A DNA stretch of 64,000 nucleotides from Guillardia theta CCMP2712 (lineage: Eukaryota; Protista; Cryptophyta), in assembly GCF_000315625.1 (NCBI RefSeq), contig NW_005434566.1, positions 68,375 to 132,374 of the forward strand, read 5' to 3'. This document shows, in pieces, positions 43,172 through 52,200 of this stretch (positions are counted from its first letter, which is position 1; each line of letters opens with the position of its first letter). The notes below the pieces were generated by a model. That model saw only the letters and a list, made by a program, of their open reading frames with translations. It had not been told where the DNA came from and made no database searches. The position numbers and the translations under genes are program-made.

Positions 43172-43737
43172 ATGCGCTGACAGTGTAAGCAGAACGAGAG
43201 GAGGTGGGAAGAAGCTGTTCTGCAGAGCGACTACAACTGAGAGAGGACAGGGCGGGAGCATACGAAGCAACAATCTTACAAGAAACAAACACAAGAGAAG
43301 AACTCACCATCAACTATCTTACGAGAAACAAACACAAGAGAAGAACTCACCATCACTTCTCATCCGCGTCCTGTCCTCCTTCGCTCTCGTTGGCCCTCTC
43401 CTCGTCCTCCTCCTCATGCTCAAGTCACCTCCTCCAGCTCTTCTTCTCCTCCCCTTCCTCTTCCTCCTACAGTACTCCATCCTCCTCCCCCCTCCCCCCC
43501 CTCGTGAAGTGGGTCCCTGCGCTCCCATTTTTGAGTCGCTTTTCCCTACTGCGCCCCCTACTGAATTTGCGCTTTTCCCCTCTTGCTACCCTGAGCATCC
43601 TCTTCCGCATCTCCCGGCCCCGCTGCAGATAGANNNNNNNNNNNNNNNNNNNNNNNNNNNNNNNNNNNNNNNNNNNNNNNNNNNNNNNNNNNNNNNNNNN
43701 NNNNNNNNNNNNNNNNNNNNNNNNNNNNNNNNNAGGA

Positions 43738-44150
43738 TCAGAGTAGAAACCCTGGTCGACACGGAGCTTGATCACTATCGCCTAGGCAGTAGTAGCCCGC
43801 CACGCACTCCAGGCAAGCTGTCTGTCCCTCTAGTGACGTGTACGTCCCTGCTACGCATGCCGTGCACGAGGTACCTCCACATGCCTGGGAAAACTTTCCG
43901 ACCTGACAGGCGGAGCAGCTCCGATTTCCGTCTTGTATCCAGGTGCCAGCCTTGCAGATCAAAAGCGGCATCGTGAATGGCAAAGAATGAGAGACAGGGG
44001 CGAAGTCCATGGCAACGGGGTAGTTGGTATTGACACCCGAGTCCCCTGCTACGTAAATCTGAATTGAAGCTGGCTGCTGTGCAGAGAATGAGTTCTGGAC
44101 TGGAAACGAGAAAGAGACGATCTTTGAAGATTCGGTGACAGCAATTGTGT
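43738..44150 (-). CDS. Orphan exon with GCC2/GCC3 (ephrin-receptor-like) Cys-rich repeats
   Basis: CKAGTW...CSACQVGKFS...CTACVAGTYT...CLECVAGYYC...PCRPG; runs into the N gap. Confidence 0.75.
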
Positions 44151-44216
44151 AGAGGAGAGGAGAGGCGTGGAGAGGAGAGGAGAGGAGAGGAGGGCAAGGG
44201 AGAAGATACTGCAAGG

Positions 44217-44650
44217 ATGAAGAAACTGGTCCTTCCTTTCATCCTCGCAGCCTCTATCCTCGCTCTGACTCCTCTGATTCTCCTGCACTCCATCGATGAT
44301 GTCAACCATAGCCGGAGCCCGGGAAGAGGAGTGGGGCGAGGAGGAGGAGGAGGAGGTGGTGGTGGTGGTCGAGGAGGAGTTATCAAGTCGAACAGGACGC
44401 CGTTGGCTGAGAGCAGCTTGTTGCATGGGGAGAAGGTTGCTGTTCGGGCGGAGGTCACGAACTCATCGGTCCATGCCGACGGCTCCTTCGCTTCCCTGCT
44501 GCAGCGACTAAAGACGCAGAAAGAAAGAGTCCATGAGGTAGCGGAGCCTGACAGAGCGAGCAAGGAGAGGACGAAGACGAAGCCGCAGCAGCTCAAAGAT
44601 TCCTCCTCCTCCTCCTCCTCCTCCTCCTCCTCCTCCTCCAACAGCAATAT

Positions 44651-44734
<84 letters not shown>

Positions 44735-47700
44735 TGCCGACTCACCAGCAAGTTTGTTCTCTGCTCTTGTACCGGAACGAGGGCAGAGGGTCGATGAGCA
44801 TCGGGTCATGCCGGCGCCTCCTACTCCAGTGGCGTCTCGCTCACCTCTCCGACACCCAGCTCATGCTCAGCCAGGCAACATGACGGGACGAGACTGCGAG
44901 GGAGGAGAGGAGGAGGAGGAGGAGGAGAAGTTCGTGCTGTGGGATCAAGGGAGAACGCGAGATCTGCGCTGCTCAATCTTCTCGCGCAGTTTGACGTCGA
45001 CCGTTGAAAGAAGGTTTGAGTATGGCAGGAGTCAGCTCAAGCTTGGCACCCGCTTCGACCCGCTCGTGTGCTACACGTACGTCAACGAGGAATGCTGGAC
45101 AACAGAGCAGGTGGAGGATGGCAGCGACTGCGAGGATGGGGGGACGGAGGATCAGTATGCGAGGGTGAGAAAAGAGAGCAAGATCCTGTGGAGGAGGAAG
45201 TCGGAGGACAAACGAACCTCCCTGTTCTACATCAGGAGGGCGATCTCGACGGGTAGAGTGGAGGAGGACGAGGACGACGAGCGCGGGGAAGATGATGAGG
45301 AGGAGGACGGGGAGGAGAAACGCGACTGGTTCTTCGGGGAGGTTGAGAGCGCGTCCGGGTGGGGGGAAAGGGCATTGAAGGCAGCGGCAGACGTGGCAAG
45401 CAAGAAAGGCTGGAAGGAAATCTCCCTCCTCCTCCATGGGGACTCTCTCGCCCAGCTAGCGAGGAATGTCGACGAACGGTTCTCAGCTCCCCTCTGCCTC
45501 TTCTCCGCCTCGTCGCTGGACGGGTTGCAGGAGTACAACCAGCGGGCCTCCTCCTCCTCCAGGCTCTCGTGCCTCGTCGCCTTCCATGCGCTGAAGCAGG
45601 AGAAGGTCAGGAGTCTGTTCGTCAGCGCGACTATGTTCGACGTCCTCGTGCTGGGAGAGCTCCCTTCTCTCTTTGACACCCTCCTGCCCCACGAGGTCCT
45701 CCTGCACCTCGGTCGGCTCCTCCTCCTCTCGCACGTGACCCTCCTGCCGGTGAAGCAGCTGCGCAGCTTGCTGTCCCTTGTCAGCGAGACGGAGAAGAAT
45801 CCGCAGCGGCTGATCGAGATGAGCGTGAGGAGGATCAGCCCCAAGGTCAAGGTCGAGGTCAAGCAGCTAAGGATGGACGTGCTGCTGGTGGAGGTGCTGG
45901 AGGGTGACCTGAGGAGGGTTAGAGTCGTTGACCTTGACAACCTGCTGTGTAAGGAGACCAGGAGCTGGAGGGAGCTCGGAGCCCCTGCCCTCCTCACCCC
46001 CTCCTCCTACACGCTGAGGATCAAGGACAGCAAGGCTCTTCTCACCCCCGAGGGGAGGGAGCACGAGCAGGATCGTCCTGCGCGCGAGCTCAGGAGGGGG
46101 CATGTCTCCTTGCAAGCTGTCATGATAGTCGGCCTGCAGCCTCAGGTCGTCTCCTCTCTCTTCTCGCAGCTGCTCCACCTTCCCTTCCCCCCATGGGCCC
46201 CCCTCCTCTCCTGGAGCTCGGTCGCGCAGCTCCAAGTCGCGCACAACCCAGAGACTTTGAGCTTCGACGTCTGCCTGTCGAGCCTTCCGGCGTTTGTGGA
46301 GCAGCAGCAGGCGAACAAAGACAAGGAGGAGGATGGTGCGTCTTCGCACAAGCGATCGGCAGCCAAGAAGTCGCAGAAGTCTGCGAAGGAGGAGGAAGTG
46401 AAGGAGGGGGATGGAGAGAAGGAGGAGGAGGAGGAGGAAGACACTGCGAAGAAGGATAGCGAGGGCGGGGAGGAGGCAGAGGTCAAGAAGAAGAGCAGCA
46501 AGGGGAGGGGGAACAAGACAACGAGCAAGAGGAAGCTGATGGGAGAGGAGGAGGAGGACAAGGAGGAGAAGCAAGAGGAGAAGTCAAAGGACGGCACATC
46601 GCTGCCGCCCCCACAGCCCATCGACATATTCTCTTCCTCCATGGTCCAGTCTTGCAACTCTCTCCTTTCTTCCCTCCTCCAGCACGTCAGCAGCAGCAGC
46701 AAGGTGCTCCTCTTCGGCTCTGAGCTCTCCCTCCTCGGCGTCAAGATTGCCTCTTCCCTCCCCGACGTTCTCGTCCTCGTCGTCCACCAGCACGAGCAGC
46801 ATGCGCGCATGCAGCGGCGGCTAGCAGGGGAGATGCGCCTGACCAACCTCTACTCCTCGTTCCTCGGCATGTCCGAGAGGACAGTGAAACGCCTCCTCTC
46901 CCTCCCCGAGCCCTTCGACGTCTGTATCCTCGGCCCTCACGTCTTTGCTGCTACGCTGGAAAGATCTCCCTCCTCCTTCTTCTCCTTCCTCTCCCTCCTC
47001 CTTCGCTTCGCCCCTTCCTCCTTCCTCCTCGCGCCTCCCTCCTCTTCCCTGCGCGCAGCCATGCAGGTCCTTCACCTCAACCTCTCAAGTGGATACGACA
47101 GCACGCAGGAGCTGGTGCGGCGGCTGGAGGAGGAGAGGCTGAACCCGCGGAGGATGGAAGTTGGAGGAGCAGGAGGAGGCTGCAGCTTCGAGCTGGTGCA
47201 GCTGACGGCGGAGGAGCTCGTGCGGCAGGTCAGGGTTGGGACGCGAGAGGCGGTGATGCGGATGAGGAGAGGGTCGACCCGCCTGTCGTTCATGGGGAGA
47301 GGGAGGGGGAAGGAGGGGAAAGAAGAGGAGGAGGAGCTCTACAGGAACCGGAGAGGGATGTCGATAGAGACGCTGCTGGCGTTTGGGATGCTCAACGAGA
47401 CGAAAGCTCTCTTCCTCCGCAAGTTCCTCTCGCTCAGCCTGCCGGACCAGCCCGTGCTGCCTTGCGATGTAGTGGTGCTGGAGGATGAGCTCAAGTTCGA
47501 TCCCCTCGACCACTCCCGGCACGTTTACGCGCGCGTGTACTCGGAGGGGAGGAGGAGGAGCAAGAAGAGGATGGGGAAGGTCAAGGCCTGCAGCTACCAG
47601 GAGGAGGCAGCGAGGACGGTGGACCCGGACCATGTCAACAGGAGTGTAGCGGCAGCGAGCACGATCGCAAGTCTCCTCTCCTCCCACCACAACTTCTCCT

Positions 47701-49032
47701 TCCTCGAGTACTCGCAGTCCCTCCCCGTCGTCTCTCAGCTCCTCTCCCCCCTCCATCCTCACAGCACCTTCGTCACCGTGCAGCAGGACGAGCTCGGGCA
47801 CCTCCAGCACGTCCTCTTCCTCCAGGAGTGCGGGCCAGCCAACGTCGTTGCCTGCAACGGAGCAGCTGCTGACGTCATCCCAAAACTCTACGAGTCTCCA
47901 GAGTTCCTCCGCTTCCAGTACGCGGAGCCGATGCAGCTGATGCTGGCAGCGGAGGAGGAGGAGGCTCTTCTGGGACAGCTCCTGTCCTGTGCCATGACGA
48001 CCTTTCTCCTCCTCCCCTCTCCTCGCCTCCTCTCCACCGCCTTCTCCCTCCTCTTCCCCTCCTCTCGCCCGCCGAGCTTCGACATGATCGTCGAGGACCT
48101 TGTGGAGGAGGCTTCGGTGCCACTGAGGACGGAGGTGGAGGTAGCGTTCCTGCAGGAGCTCGGAGGGCATGTCTTGCTGCGCGTGCGGCTGATCAACATG
48201 ACGCGGGTGGCGCATCATCACTTCGACTACAAGAAGGACGGGCACGCGCGCGTGTACGACATGCTCTTCAAGGAGAGGAGGAGAGTGCCGGCGCAGCGAG
48301 AGGACGCGTACCTGCCGGGGCAGCTGACGCTGACGAGGAGGGAAGACGAGCATTCGATCCCCTACAAGGAGCTCAGGGCGATCAGCCTGATCGCGCTGCT
48401 GCGCATGGGGCTCAACAACTACCAGAAGCGGAAGTTCTACGAAAGTTTCATCCGGATGCCGCTCTTCGAGGACATGGCGCCATGGAACATCGTCTTCGAG
48501 GGAGGCATCTTGTCCTACATCGACCAGGACACGCAGGACCAGAAGTTCGACCAGCTCCTCCCCCTCGCCTACCAGACCATGTCCGCGCTCATGAACTACA
48601 TCAGAACCGTCCAGGACTTCGGCAAGTGCAAGGGAAAGGCGAGGGGAGGCAACTCTTACGGGATCCCCTACATCTCCGACTGTGTTCGCTCCTCCTTCCG
48701 CGGGCCCTGCCCCTCCTCGGATCGCCCGGTGCCCTGGTACGATTGTTGTGCTCTCTTCCTCTCCCCTCCTCTCCCCTCCTCTCCCCTCCTCTCCCCTCCT
48801 CTTCCCTCACTTCTAACCCCTCCTCTCCTCCCTCCCCCGCTCTCTCCGTTCCTCCTCTCTCCTCTCTCCTCTCCTTCCCGTCTCACATCCTGGCAGCGGC
48901 GACCACACCTGTCGCAGCACTTTCGTCGAGTGCCTGCAGGCGCTGATGGAGCAGGAGAAGAGCCGGCAGACGAGAACTTCTATCCTCGCCGACGCCTCGA
49001 AGCAGCTCACCATGAAGCTCTCCAAGTCCTAG
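44217..49032 (+). CDS. ~1550-aa signal-anchored protein with three tandem methyltransferase-like/kinase-like modules; 2 exons, intron ~48737-48896
   Basis: 4.5-kb open exon; N-terminal TM helix LVLPFILAASILALTPLILL; last module has FEDMAPWNIVFEGGILSYIDQD; Cys-rich spliced tail PC|GDHTCRSTFVECLQAL...SKS*. Confidence 0.85.
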
Positions 49033-49216
49033 ACCTCCTTCCAAGTCCTCGCGCGTAGACGAGGAACTTCTGTCAGAGAAGAGAGAGAGGCGGGGACGAG
49101 AAAGACTTTGGGGCATGTCAGGATGGAGCAGCAGGAAGAGCGGGAACAGAAACAGCCGCAGCAGCAACAGCAGGCAGCGACAGCGGCAGTAGCAGAGGAG
49201 GAGGAGGAGGAGGAGG

Positions 49217-52200
49217 TTAGGGGCAGAGGTTTGTTACATGTACTGCATGAGCGATAAGTGAAGTTAAGCCTCCGAGGGAGGGATCAATAATGTACTTGTC
49301 CTTCAGCTGGAGGCCAGCTCAAGGGAGAGGTGTCGCGAGGAGGCGGGCTCGGACCTCACTGTCCGCGAGATCCTCCTGAGATCGAACCGCCTCCAGCACC
49401 TTCCCCAGCACGAGGGGCTGCTGAACGGCAGCTGGGTGCTGCAGCTCGAGCAGCTCGGCGAGGTAGGCGTGACAGGTCTTGGCGCAGTCCACGTCATCCT
49501 TGATGGGCAGCCACGAGACCCACGTGGGAAGAATCTGCAGCAAGTCAAACTCACGCTCACATGCTCACATGCTCTCATGGTCCGCAGTCCCTCCGTCGCT
49601 CCCTCCCTCTCTCCGTCTTCCCGTCGACCTCACATCCTCTCCCTCTCCTCCCGTCCGCCCTTTGCTCTCCTTGCTCTCCTTCCCCTTCCCGTCCCTCCCG
49701 GTCACGTTGGCGACACAAGGAGCGCTCTTACCTCTCCTGCGTTGGCTGTCTTGATCTGAAACTTGCAGATGCGGCCGACGGCATCGACCGCGTTGTCTGT
49801 TGCCTCGCCATTTCCCTCCTCCCTCGAGCTCGGGTGAGTAGCGACAGCATGTAGCACTTCCAGTGCCTGGAGGGGACGAGGAGACATCAGCTGGCAAGGA
49901 CGCAAGAGCCCCCGACCCACCTTGGGGATGAAAGGTGCGAACCCGTCGCCTCCCCTCTCCGCACAGACGGCAAGACCGAAGCAAGCTGATCGTCGGACTG
50001 CATCAGAACTACGTCAGAGTCCTGCCTTGGTCCGCGTTCACAGCCTCACCAGCGGCGTCGTCATGGCAGCTGAACTGCAAGCATGCAGCGGCGATGTTGT
50101 TGAGGTTGGAGCGAGCAACATCTTCGCCGTGTTCCATCACCTCGCACAGGCAGTTGAGAGCGGCACACTTGTGCATGTCCAGTGACTTGGCGTTAGAGAG
50201 AACTTGACCGTAGACGGGGAGGAGAGACGTTTGCATCTTGCGGGCAAACCTTGACTTGAACACCTTGAGAGCGCTGGAGATGACCTCGACCATGGTCATC
50301 ATCATCGTGTCCTCCTCCTCCTCCTCCTCCTCCTCCTCTTGTGAGGGAGAGGCAACAATGTCGTCCACGATCATCTTGATGGTCTCGCACAGCCGTGCGA
50401 GCTGCTGGTCATCCAAGGACGATGCCATGCAGGCGTCGAGACACTCAGCGATGTTGGTCAGGATGTTTTCTTGCTCGTCCACCTCGGTCTCCACCAGGCA
50501 TGCCTGCAGCAAGAACGGCCACATCTGTCCCATCAGCAGGACCAAGTCGCCCTCGCTCATCATCCCCTTCTCCATACCGGCACGAGCGCACACCAGCAGC
50601 TTCGGCATGGAGTCGACGGCTGCCCTGCGAACGGAGGTGGAGAGCTTGTAGGTGAGACCGGGAATGAGAATCTCAGAGGCTCTCTTGAGCTCGGGGAGGA
50701 AGTTCTCCTTGAGAGACTCGGCAAGGGCGGCCAGCACGTTGAAGCCGAGGGCCTTGTCCTCGAGCTCCTTGATGTTGATGCTGACTCGCATCTTGCCCAT
50801 CCCCTTGATGCTTACGATCGTCGCCTCCCCGTCCATCTCTCCCTCCTCCTGATCTGCTTCCTGCATGTCCAACTTGGGGTCCAGACCAGCGTATCCATAG
50901 ACCTGGGGGAGGAGATGAGGGAGGTACTGGAGGAAGGACTGGCCCATGCTCCTTGAGATGCGGCAGCACGCCTGGAGGAAGTAGGACATCTGAGCATCCC
51001 CCGTCTGGTTCCTCTCGTGGAAGGACATCAGCAGGTTCATGACGGCTGGGGCGTCCTTGGAGAAGTGCTCAGTGCCGACAGCATCCGCGATGCACGAGAT
51101 GCTCTCCATCGCTCGTCCGCAGAGGTCCCTGTAGTCTTCTCCCACGCTGTGATCGGAGGACGACAAGATGCTGAGCAGGCCAGGCATGAGGTGATTGTAG
51201 TACCGCACGAAGTTCTCGTTGAGAGCGGAAGCAAGGGAGGAGACAGCAGTGATGGCACACTTCTGCTGGGGGATGGAGCCCGATCCGAGGATGGACAGGA
51301 GGCTGGCAATGAGCTCGTCCGAGTACTTGAGGAGAATCTCCTCGTGCTCCTCCTCGCACTCTGCCGTGAAATCGACCAGGCACTGTCGCCAGCAGTCAGC
51401 CCAACATCACTCCCTCTCTCACCAGCCTCACCTTGGCGGCACGGGATCGTATCCTCTCATGGGAACTCGACATCAATCGCTGCAGCGAGGGCAGCACCAC
51501 GTGATGGTACTCCTCCTGTACAGTGGGGGCGAAGCAGGTGCATAGGGCAGCAAGGGCCCCAAGAGCAGCCCAGGTCACCATCTGCATACCGCCGGCCATG
51601 AACTTGTTGATTGTTTCCAGGACGTGAGGGATGTTGGAGGCGAGAGACTTCTCGGCACAGGAGAGGAGCAGCGCGAGGGCTCGCAGGGCAGAGTACTGGT
51701 GCTGCCACTTGTCTGAGTTGAGCTTGTTCAAGATGATGGAGACAACGGTGGATGAAATTCGATTTCCTCCCATGGCAAGGAAGAATCTCTCCATCGACTC
51801 TTCGCCGTATCTCACGAGCTCCTCGACTTCGTCCTTGTCTTCCTCGTCGCCGACATTCTTGTACCAATCCGCCTCCTCCTCGATCGCTTCCACCATCGAC
51901 ATCATCACCGGCAGGCAGTTCTCCGTCAGCTGCGGGATCTTTCTTGCCAGCGCCGGCTTGTTCTCCACGTAAGTAACAATGAGCTCCATGGCGAGGCTTC
52001 GCAAATCATCGTCAACTTCCGCATTCCCTGTAGAAGGATCAGCGTCGGGCATGAGACATGCGAGCACGTACCTGTGACGGCATGCGCAGACGCGAGAAGC
52101 TGTTCGATCGAGGGTTTCACAAAGCCGGGGTCTTGAGCGGTGAGGTCGATCAGAGCTGAGAGGCACGTCCTAGACTTGTCGCGGCTTCCCGACTGGAAGG

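Follow-up and report, generated by a model that had tools for sequence, protein, structure and literature searches.

Three tandem methyltransferase-like and kinase-like modules in a secretory-type protein of Guillardia theta, the last of which alone keeps kinase-type residues

Described here is a gene on the plus strand, between positions 44217 and 49032, of a 64,000-nucleotide stretch of the Guillardia theta CCMP2712 genome (contig NW_005434566.1, positions 68,375 to 132,374; hereafter the window). It encodes a protein of 1551 amino acid residues in which one unit occurs three times, and only the C-terminal copy, module 3, is under strong constraint of the active-site type, as judged from residue conservation. 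The best explanation overall, which we regard as probable although by no means certain, is that of an anchored secretory-pathway or surface protein whose third module would be a nucleotide-dependent phosphotransferase and whose modules 1 and 2 would be pseudo-enzymes. The strengths of this account are the gene model, its expression, the triplication, the methyltransferase fold, and the pattern of conservation; the activity and substrate of module 3, the localisation of the protein, and the role of the degenerate modules we infer. An earlier note on the window, made from the sequence alone, had proposed a WbdD-type glycan phosphorylating or capping enzyme. That interpretation is supported in part: the triplication and the methyltransferase fold were borne out, and the kinase-like fold received moderate support.

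Three tandem modules in a two-exon gene

The modules, with approximate boundaries for the first two, are as follows.

45384..46271, plus strand: module 1, residues 390-685 (approximate), a degenerate methyltransferase-like plus kinase-like copy (hhalign versus module 3)
46614..47531, plus strand: module 2, residues 800-1105 (approximate), a degenerate copy (hhalign versus module 3)
47634..48203, plus strand: module 3, methyltransferase-fold half, residues 1140-1329
48204..48623, plus strand: module 3, reduced protein-kinase-like half, residues 1330-1469 (H1334, H1335, H1343, R1345, Y1347, R1374, R1396, D1419, W1423, N1424, D1436, D1438, N1460)
48471..48530, plus strand: catalytic-loop-like D-M-A-P-W-N through I-D-Q-D, with the I-D-Q-D aspartates at 48522 and 48528
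48624..48736, plus strand: start of the Cys-rich C-terminal tail (C1471, C1489, C1498; these Cys family-invariant, low model confidence)

Module 3 comprises residues 1140-1506 (367 residues) and is followed by a 45-residue tail, the first residue of which, Cys 1507, is split by an intron. Pairwise comparison by BLASTP of the modules as first delimited gave weak, colinear matches. A hidden Markov model (HMM) derived from the homologues' C-terminal modules matched both module 2 (residues 830-1093, independent E-value 1e-13, HMM positions 23-294) and module 1 (residues 398-656, 1e-6, HMM positions 17-276) in a colinear fashion, and it matched module 2 of animal homologues at 1e-47 to 1e-67. A jackhmmer search starting from module 2 covered 44 proteins and, in 22 of them (the window protein included), revealed two upstream copies of nearly full length. 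With hhalign run on non-overlapping family alignments, module 2 aligned with module 3 at a probability of 100 (E-value 6e-40, 260 columns), module 1 with module 3 at 99.0 (4e-18, 257 columns), and module 1 with module 2 at 98.9 (2.5e-17, 237 columns). The triplication is real and ancient. Indeed, the three tandem modules of the earlier note are all recovered by the homologue HMM and by hhalign, and the four blocks that it had aligned by eye are each paired identically by the latter. The aligned range in module 3 extends over residues 16-295 of 303 and thus takes in both halves through the catalytic-loop hairpin; the long helix after the hairpin and the Cys tail are unique to module 3.

Among 30 module-3 sequences from cryptophytes to echinoderms (sea urchins), with an overall identity of ~35%, about 28 columns are invariant. 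These include Asp 1419, Asn 1424, Asp 1436, a His/Arg/Tyr cluster, and three Cys; a further Cys, in PVPC, is almost invariant, and the tail contains another two conserved Cys. When the module-3 residues were projected via the hhalign alignments onto 22 module-2 and 22 module-1 sequences, the putative catalytic residues were found to be conserved in none of these sets. In module 2, Asp 1419 is kept in 11 of the 22 sequences, Trp 1423 in 5 of 22, and Asn 1424 in 3 of 22, with the positions of Asp 1436 and Asp 1438 (the DFG position) lying outside the aligned range. Module 1 displays zero retention of the module-3 invariant catalytic residues. Asn 1209 in the methyltransferase half is retained in modules 1, 2, and 3 alike, which suggests that its role is structural. 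That only the last module is intact had been claimed for this protein; the pattern of residues is as described, it is true of the whole family, and it suggests that module 3 may be catalytically active. The D-x-x-P-W-N...I-D-x-D sequence is likewise confined to module 3, as had been noticed, and module 2 reads P-V-L-P-C-D at that position.

The gene occupies the sole long open reading frame of the region (44145-49058, plus strand), with a Met codon at 44217. Its final ~100 codons before splicing are rich in proline and serine and resemble intron read-through. After Pro-Val-Pro the homologues continue with C-G-D-H-T-C...Y-I-x-C-L, and the same motif is found downstream in the window in a different frame. 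On the basis of these two features a 160-nucleotide intron was predicted and the second exon placed.

44217..48736, plus strand: exon 1, codons 1-1506 plus the first two bases of that for Cys 1507 (open frame, Hanusia phi start Met, transcript-like contigs)
48737..48896, plus strand: intron, 160 nucleotides, GT..AG, CT-rich (predicted from the homologues' PVPCGDHTC motif; join seen in runs X1 and X2)
48897..49032, plus strand: exon 2, the rest of the Cys-rich tail (C1507, C1512, C1519), with the stop codon at 49030-49032

The join from 48735/6 to 48896/7 is exact in transcript-like contigs of X1 (depth 128) and X2 (depth 14.6), and thus the gene is expressed and spliced as modeled. The contigs of both runs are unbroken over 44742-48735, and a contig of a third run, X12, continues into the intron. 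The transcript comparison skips repeats, such that the 5' low-complexity stretch at 44174-44741 is outside its reach; raw RNA reads from run X19 numbered three at the locus, too few for use. The end coordinate first assigned, 49032, is the correct stop, reached by way of the intron. The spliced frame, PVPCGDHTCRSTFVECLQAL, agrees with the homologues, and the nearest database relative is a protein from the cryptophyte Hanusia phi with 88% identity over module 3 and the same start Met.

Neither the whole protein nor any single module has a match at threshold in Pfam or NCBIfam. An exhaustive profile search among 1.84 billion entries returned 654 representatives at E ≤ 1e-3, 455 at ≤ 1e-10, and 223 at ≤ 1e-30, and most of the long matches contained 2-5 matched stretches. 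The phyletic mapping called for in the earlier note gave as named members cryptophytes (Hanusia, Baffinella), ochrophytes (Triparma, Tetraparma, a pelagophyte, Chrysocystis, a chrysophyte), and animals (the sponges Sycon and Corticium, echinoderms, a hemichordate, molluscs, an annelid). No vertebrate, arthropod, nematode, fungal, or plant names occur among the members listed, which is not proof of absence. A pattern scan with the kinase-like half, which sees only loci keeping DMAPWNI-type motifs, revealed no confirmed relative in the GTDB prokaryote genomes and IMG/VR, and word searches for single-module relatives returned eukaryotic fragments only. Neither "WbdD-like" nor "DMAPWN" appears in any paper of the literature searched. 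The family is undescribed and eukaryotic, and its named members come from marine algae and marine invertebrates.

Predicted fold of module 3 and comparison with WbdD

The model of module 3 was calculated with AlphaFold2 from a 30-sequence alignment and has a mean predicted local distance difference test score (pLDDT) of 84.3 and a predicted template modeling score (pTM) of 0.83. As can be seen in this model, the first half adopts the class I methyltransferase fold, namely a Rossmann-like, seven-stranded α/β arrangement. A search of BFVD returned methyltransferases only, and weak, sub-threshold Pfam methyltransferase matches occur at motif I of the homologues. Profile and short-peptide searches of the PDB sequences likewise gave only sub-threshold matches to methyltransferase motif I; matches to S15 and pentraxin in these searches were spurious. 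The last β-hairpin of the methyltransferase-fold domain runs on into the kinase-like half, and the hairpin is shared with the methyltransferase sheet.

The glycine-rich motif I (E/D-x-G-x-G-x-G) and the acidic end of β2 are absent from all three modules of the window protein, as had been suspected for motif I. The sequences at motif I are EYSQSLP in module 3 (with the β2 end TVQQ), LLFGSELS in module 2, and LLLHGDSL in module 1, and those of the Hanusia module 3 are EYSPSLP and TVQE. The modules thus differ from class I S-adenosylmethionine (SAM)-dependent methyltransferases such as Trm5a (PDB 5HJI), which contain both features, and no Pfam methyltransferase model reaches threshold on this protein. 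Most animal sequences are also degenerate at motif I. In module 3 of several protist homologues (P0007, P0010, P0013, P0016, P0023, P0028, and P0037), however, E-x-G/N-S-G-x-G and S-[LIV]-E are kept, as exemplified by LEYGSGRG with SLE, and L-E-I/L-G-x-G is retained in some of the homologues' module 1 copies. Given that motif I is degenerate here and intact in several protists, SAM binding has probably been lost in the methyltransferase-like halves of this protein and may persist elsewhere in the family.

The second half, folded alone, yielded a pLDDT of 79.3, and in three structure libraries it matched mostly protein kinases. The Foldseek matches include CDPK, PknB, AMPK, CaMKII, CDK1, Mps1, and others (E-values of 0.36-1.4), and six of ten rows from the ESM Atlas are ABC1, Pkinase, or APH/RIO clusters (template modeling (TM) scores of 0.25-0.37). 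The shared segment is always residues 85-141 of the model, which consist of two helices, the loop P-L-F-E-D-M-A-P-W-N, a β-hairpin, and I-D-Q-D. It superposes on the αD-to-DFG stretch of PknB, PINK1, Mnk2, CaMKI, and others at 2.2-2.9 Å. The spacing of five between Asp 1419 and Asn 1424, and the position of Asp 1436 twelve residues past Asn 1424, are those of the canonical kinase catalytic Asp, Asn, and DFG Asp. Weighing against a kinase-like assignment, the fold scores lie below the safe level of the tools, and the match to a bilobal kinase fold is moderate. The half is small (~140 residues) and is without an αC helix, at the position of which there is a variable, low-confidence loop with lineage-specific insertions. 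No invariant Lys or Glu that could provide the β3 Lys/αC Glu pair occurs in the small lobe of the 30 homologues; the invariant residues there are His 1334, His 1335, His 1343, Arg 1345, Tyr 1347, and Arg 1374. The model moderately supports the assignment of the second half as a reduced protein-kinase-like domain. The structure prediction and Foldseek comparison advocated in the earlier note, carried out on module 3, thus agree with it on the methyltransferase fold and, at moderate scores, on the kinase-like lobe.

The closest known architecture is that of WbdD, the bifunctional kinase/phosphate methyltransferase of E. coli O9a (PDB 4AZS, 4AX8, and 4UW0), which phosphorylates and then methylates a terminal mannose and in which a class I methyltransferase domain likewise directly precedes a kinase-type domain. 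In WbdD, D351 is essential, W355 stacks on a Tyr of the nucleotide loop, and N356 and D369 bind Mg; the kinase part contains 249 residues, and a C-terminal coiled coil trimerises the enzyme (PMC3482155). The D-x-x-x-W-N spacing is the same in the two proteins (D351, W355, and N356 in WbdD; Asp 1419, Trp 1423, and Asn 1424 here), as are a Mg-binding Asp, or its counterpart, 12-13 residues after the Asn and a short activation segment. Of the 50 Foldseek matches listed, the WbdD entries are the only ones that span at least 350 columns of the 367-residue module (352-407 columns, E-value of about 1e-6). The rigid-body fit, however, covers the methyltransferase domain only, the packing of the domains differs, and the methyltransferase domain of WbdD is not the closest methyltransferase structure to module 3. 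Profile and single-sequence searches of the PDB sequences did not list WbdD at E ≤ 10. The kinase part is ~140 residues here with no αC helix, and a six-Cys tail takes the place of the trimerising coiled coil. Whereas WbdD is a bacterial, cytoplasmic homotrimer, the present protein is eukaryotic, of secretory type, and carries three copies per chain, and it has lost motif I. Membership of the WbdD family is not supported, given the lack of sequence homology and of a coiled coil, the smaller kinase part, and the different domain packing. The label "WbdD-type" thus stands for domain order and D-x-x-x-W-N spacing, and fails for sequence homology and the coiled coil.

Other systems are more distant. 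The minimal or atypical protein-kinase-like enzymes (Bud32/KEOPS, WaaP, APH/RIO, and ABC1/UbiB) display no sequence similarity to module 3, which lacks the Lys/Glu pair and builds its small lobe partly from the last hairpin of the methyltransferase domain. The best whole-module match in the ESM Atlas is a cluster of 54 hypothetical phage (Uroviricota) proteins of 312 residues, annotated only as methyltransferase-like. This is a match of shape (TM scores of 0.59/0.68, 267 aligned residues over 1-344 of the model), and it hints that phages may have single-module proteins with a methyltransferase and a mini-kinase-like part. Matches to glycolipid-transfer proteins in an ESM Atlas feature search with module 3 scored ≤ 0.87 and were discarded as chance.

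Proposed function

In the explanation favored here, the N-terminal hydrophobic segment would hold the protein in the secretory pathway or on the cell surface, and the three modules would descend from one methyltransferase-plus-kinase-like unit by ancient triplication. Module 3 keeps a putative catalytic-loop Asp (1419), metal-binding Asn (1424), and DFG-position Asp (1436, with Asp 1438), together with a Trp that corresponds to W355 of WbdD and the small-lobe His/Arg/Tyr cluster, and is followed by a disulfide-type six-Cys tail. It would function as a nucleotide-dependent phosphotransferase on a luminal or extracellular substrate, most likely a glycan, to judge from the analogous WbdD and the sugar kinases of the secretory pathway. 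Modules 1 and 2 would serve as scaffold, spacer, or substrate-binding parts. The animal secretory-pathway kinases Fam20B/C, POMK, and Fjx1 are anchored in the membrane, carry a kinase-like domain that faces the lumen, and act on sugar or protein substrates, and pseudo-kinase partners such as Fam20A exist among them. They provide an analogy for the anchor and a luminal kinase-like domain, but none is among the fold matches, and they are without a methyltransferase-fold domain or tandem modules.

A second half derived from the kinase fold might instead carry out other chemistry, such as protein phosphorylation, AMPylation, or another nucleotide-dependent transfer. Indeed, atypical members of the protein-kinase fold such as SelO and SidJ catalyse other reactions, and here the kinase-like core and the Asp/Asn/Asp triad are present while an invariant H-H...H-x-R-x-Y cluster replaces the ATP-anchoring Lys/Glu pair. 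The short segment from the DFG Asp to the long helix and the catalytic-loop Trp nevertheless resemble those of WbdD, a sugar kinase, and no particular alternative reaction is favored by the data; we consider this possible but rather unlikely. It is improbable that the second half is not kinase-derived at all, the likeness being a local coincidence in a family-specific metal- or ligand-binding extension that uses the His cluster. The moderate fold scores, the four invariant His/Arg residues with no Lys, the β-hairpin common to the methyltransferase sheet, and the methyltransferase-like annotation of the top phage match would fit such an origin. It would leave unaccounted for the invariant Asp, Asn, and Asp at canonical spacings and the repeated superposition of the same 56 residues on kinases of unrelated subfamilies.

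A true bifunctional enzyme of the WbdD type, which would phosphorylate a sugar and methylate the phosphate, is very unlikely: the domain order equals that of WbdD and several protist homologues keep motif I and the acidic β2 end, but the window and Hanusia sequences are altered at both sites, and the closest methyltransferase structure is not the WbdD domain. Least likely of all is a non-enzymatic structural or adhesive surface protein built of dead enzyme folds, for although modules 1 and 2 are plainly degenerate and the linkers and stem are long and of low complexity, the module-3 positions invariant from cryptophytes to sea urchins include His and charged residues where a kinase has its active site.

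Should module 3 be an active phosphotransferase, as we favor, it would represent a new eukaryotic family with the methyltransferase-plus-kinase architecture that had so far been known from a bacterial enzyme that terminates the O antigen. The family would also offer a clear natural example of pseudo-enzyme duplication, in which two inactive modules have been conserved alongside an active one for hundreds of millions of years. The protein is a candidate, open to direct testing, for an enzyme that modifies marine extracellular glycans with phosphate or methylphosphate. A further thought, speculative and doubtful, is that the chain forms a pseudo-trimer that mimics the WbdD homotrimer, in which a single site is live and the two inactive copies grip a growing glycan, outside the cell or in the Golgi, or gauge its length. 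It would then be a eukaryotic chain-terminating glycan phosphotransferase, or a methylphosphate-capping enzyme in those protist lineages that keep motif I, and would define a class of secretory-pathway kinase not yet described and confined to marine algae and to marine animals outside the usual model species. To our knowledge, few kinases of the secretory pathway have been identified, and each of them was discovered in a model animal.

N-terminal region and neighboring sequence

The regions that precede module 1 are as follows.

44229..44285, plus strand: N-terminal hydrophobic segment, residues 5-23, signal peptide or type II anchor (top Kyte-Doolittle window, 2.52)
44307..44906, plus strand: low-complexity S/G/N-rich stem (composition; tandem repeats (TCC)13 and (CAACAG)16 at 44601-44734)
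44907..45347, plus strand: acidic, Cys-containing region before module 1, residues 231-377 (conserved with Hanusia phi; no Pfam match)

Residues 5-23 form the only strongly hydrophobic segment, all others being ≤ 1.9 on the Kyte-Doolittle scale. The earlier note had described a transmembrane anchor and a low-complexity stem; the stem is as described, and the hydrophobic segment is either a signal peptide or a type II anchor. A signal peptide at the N-terminus can, in cryptophytes, alternatively direct proteins into the outer compartments of the complex plastid. The ordinary secretory route is favored here because the animal homologues likewise start with hydrophobic, signal-like N-termini and the Cys tail is conserved. 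Within the stem, the perfect (TCC)13 followed by (CAACAG)16 encodes poly-Ser and (Asn-Ser)n. These repeats are missing from the Hanusia orthologue, such that the expansion is probably recent and length-variable. The acidic region contains four Cys (252, 285, 293, and 305) and may be a small extra domain. The linker between modules 1 and 2 is Glu/Lys-rich, and that between modules 2 and 3 is short.

The Hanusia phi orthologue (P0001) ends in ...RPVPW, as from reading into the homologous intron (TG/GT read as TGG), and its transcript model was probably either left unspliced at this intron or breaks off there. A second intron considered for the window at 49137-49227 was dropped; the contigs have an equal letter count there, which signifies a skipped repeat and no join.

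The window contains seven runs of N (100-997 nucleotides), including one at 43634-43733 just upstream of the gene, and is thus a gapped scaffold assembly. An open reading frame on the minus strand just upstream (43738-44214) encodes Cys-rich repeats (C-x2-C-x-x-G-x-F/Y...C-x2-C) of the furin/ephrin-receptor-like type. A transcript-like contig over 43800-44142 is far more abundant, and the frame looks like a separate, divergently oriented gene. Downstream, a convergent frame on the minus strand (50009-51208) has matches to importin-β-type repeats (PF18829 Importin_rep_6, E-value 4.5e-6; weaker IPO5 and IMB1 TPR) and is probably one exon of an importin-5-like gene.

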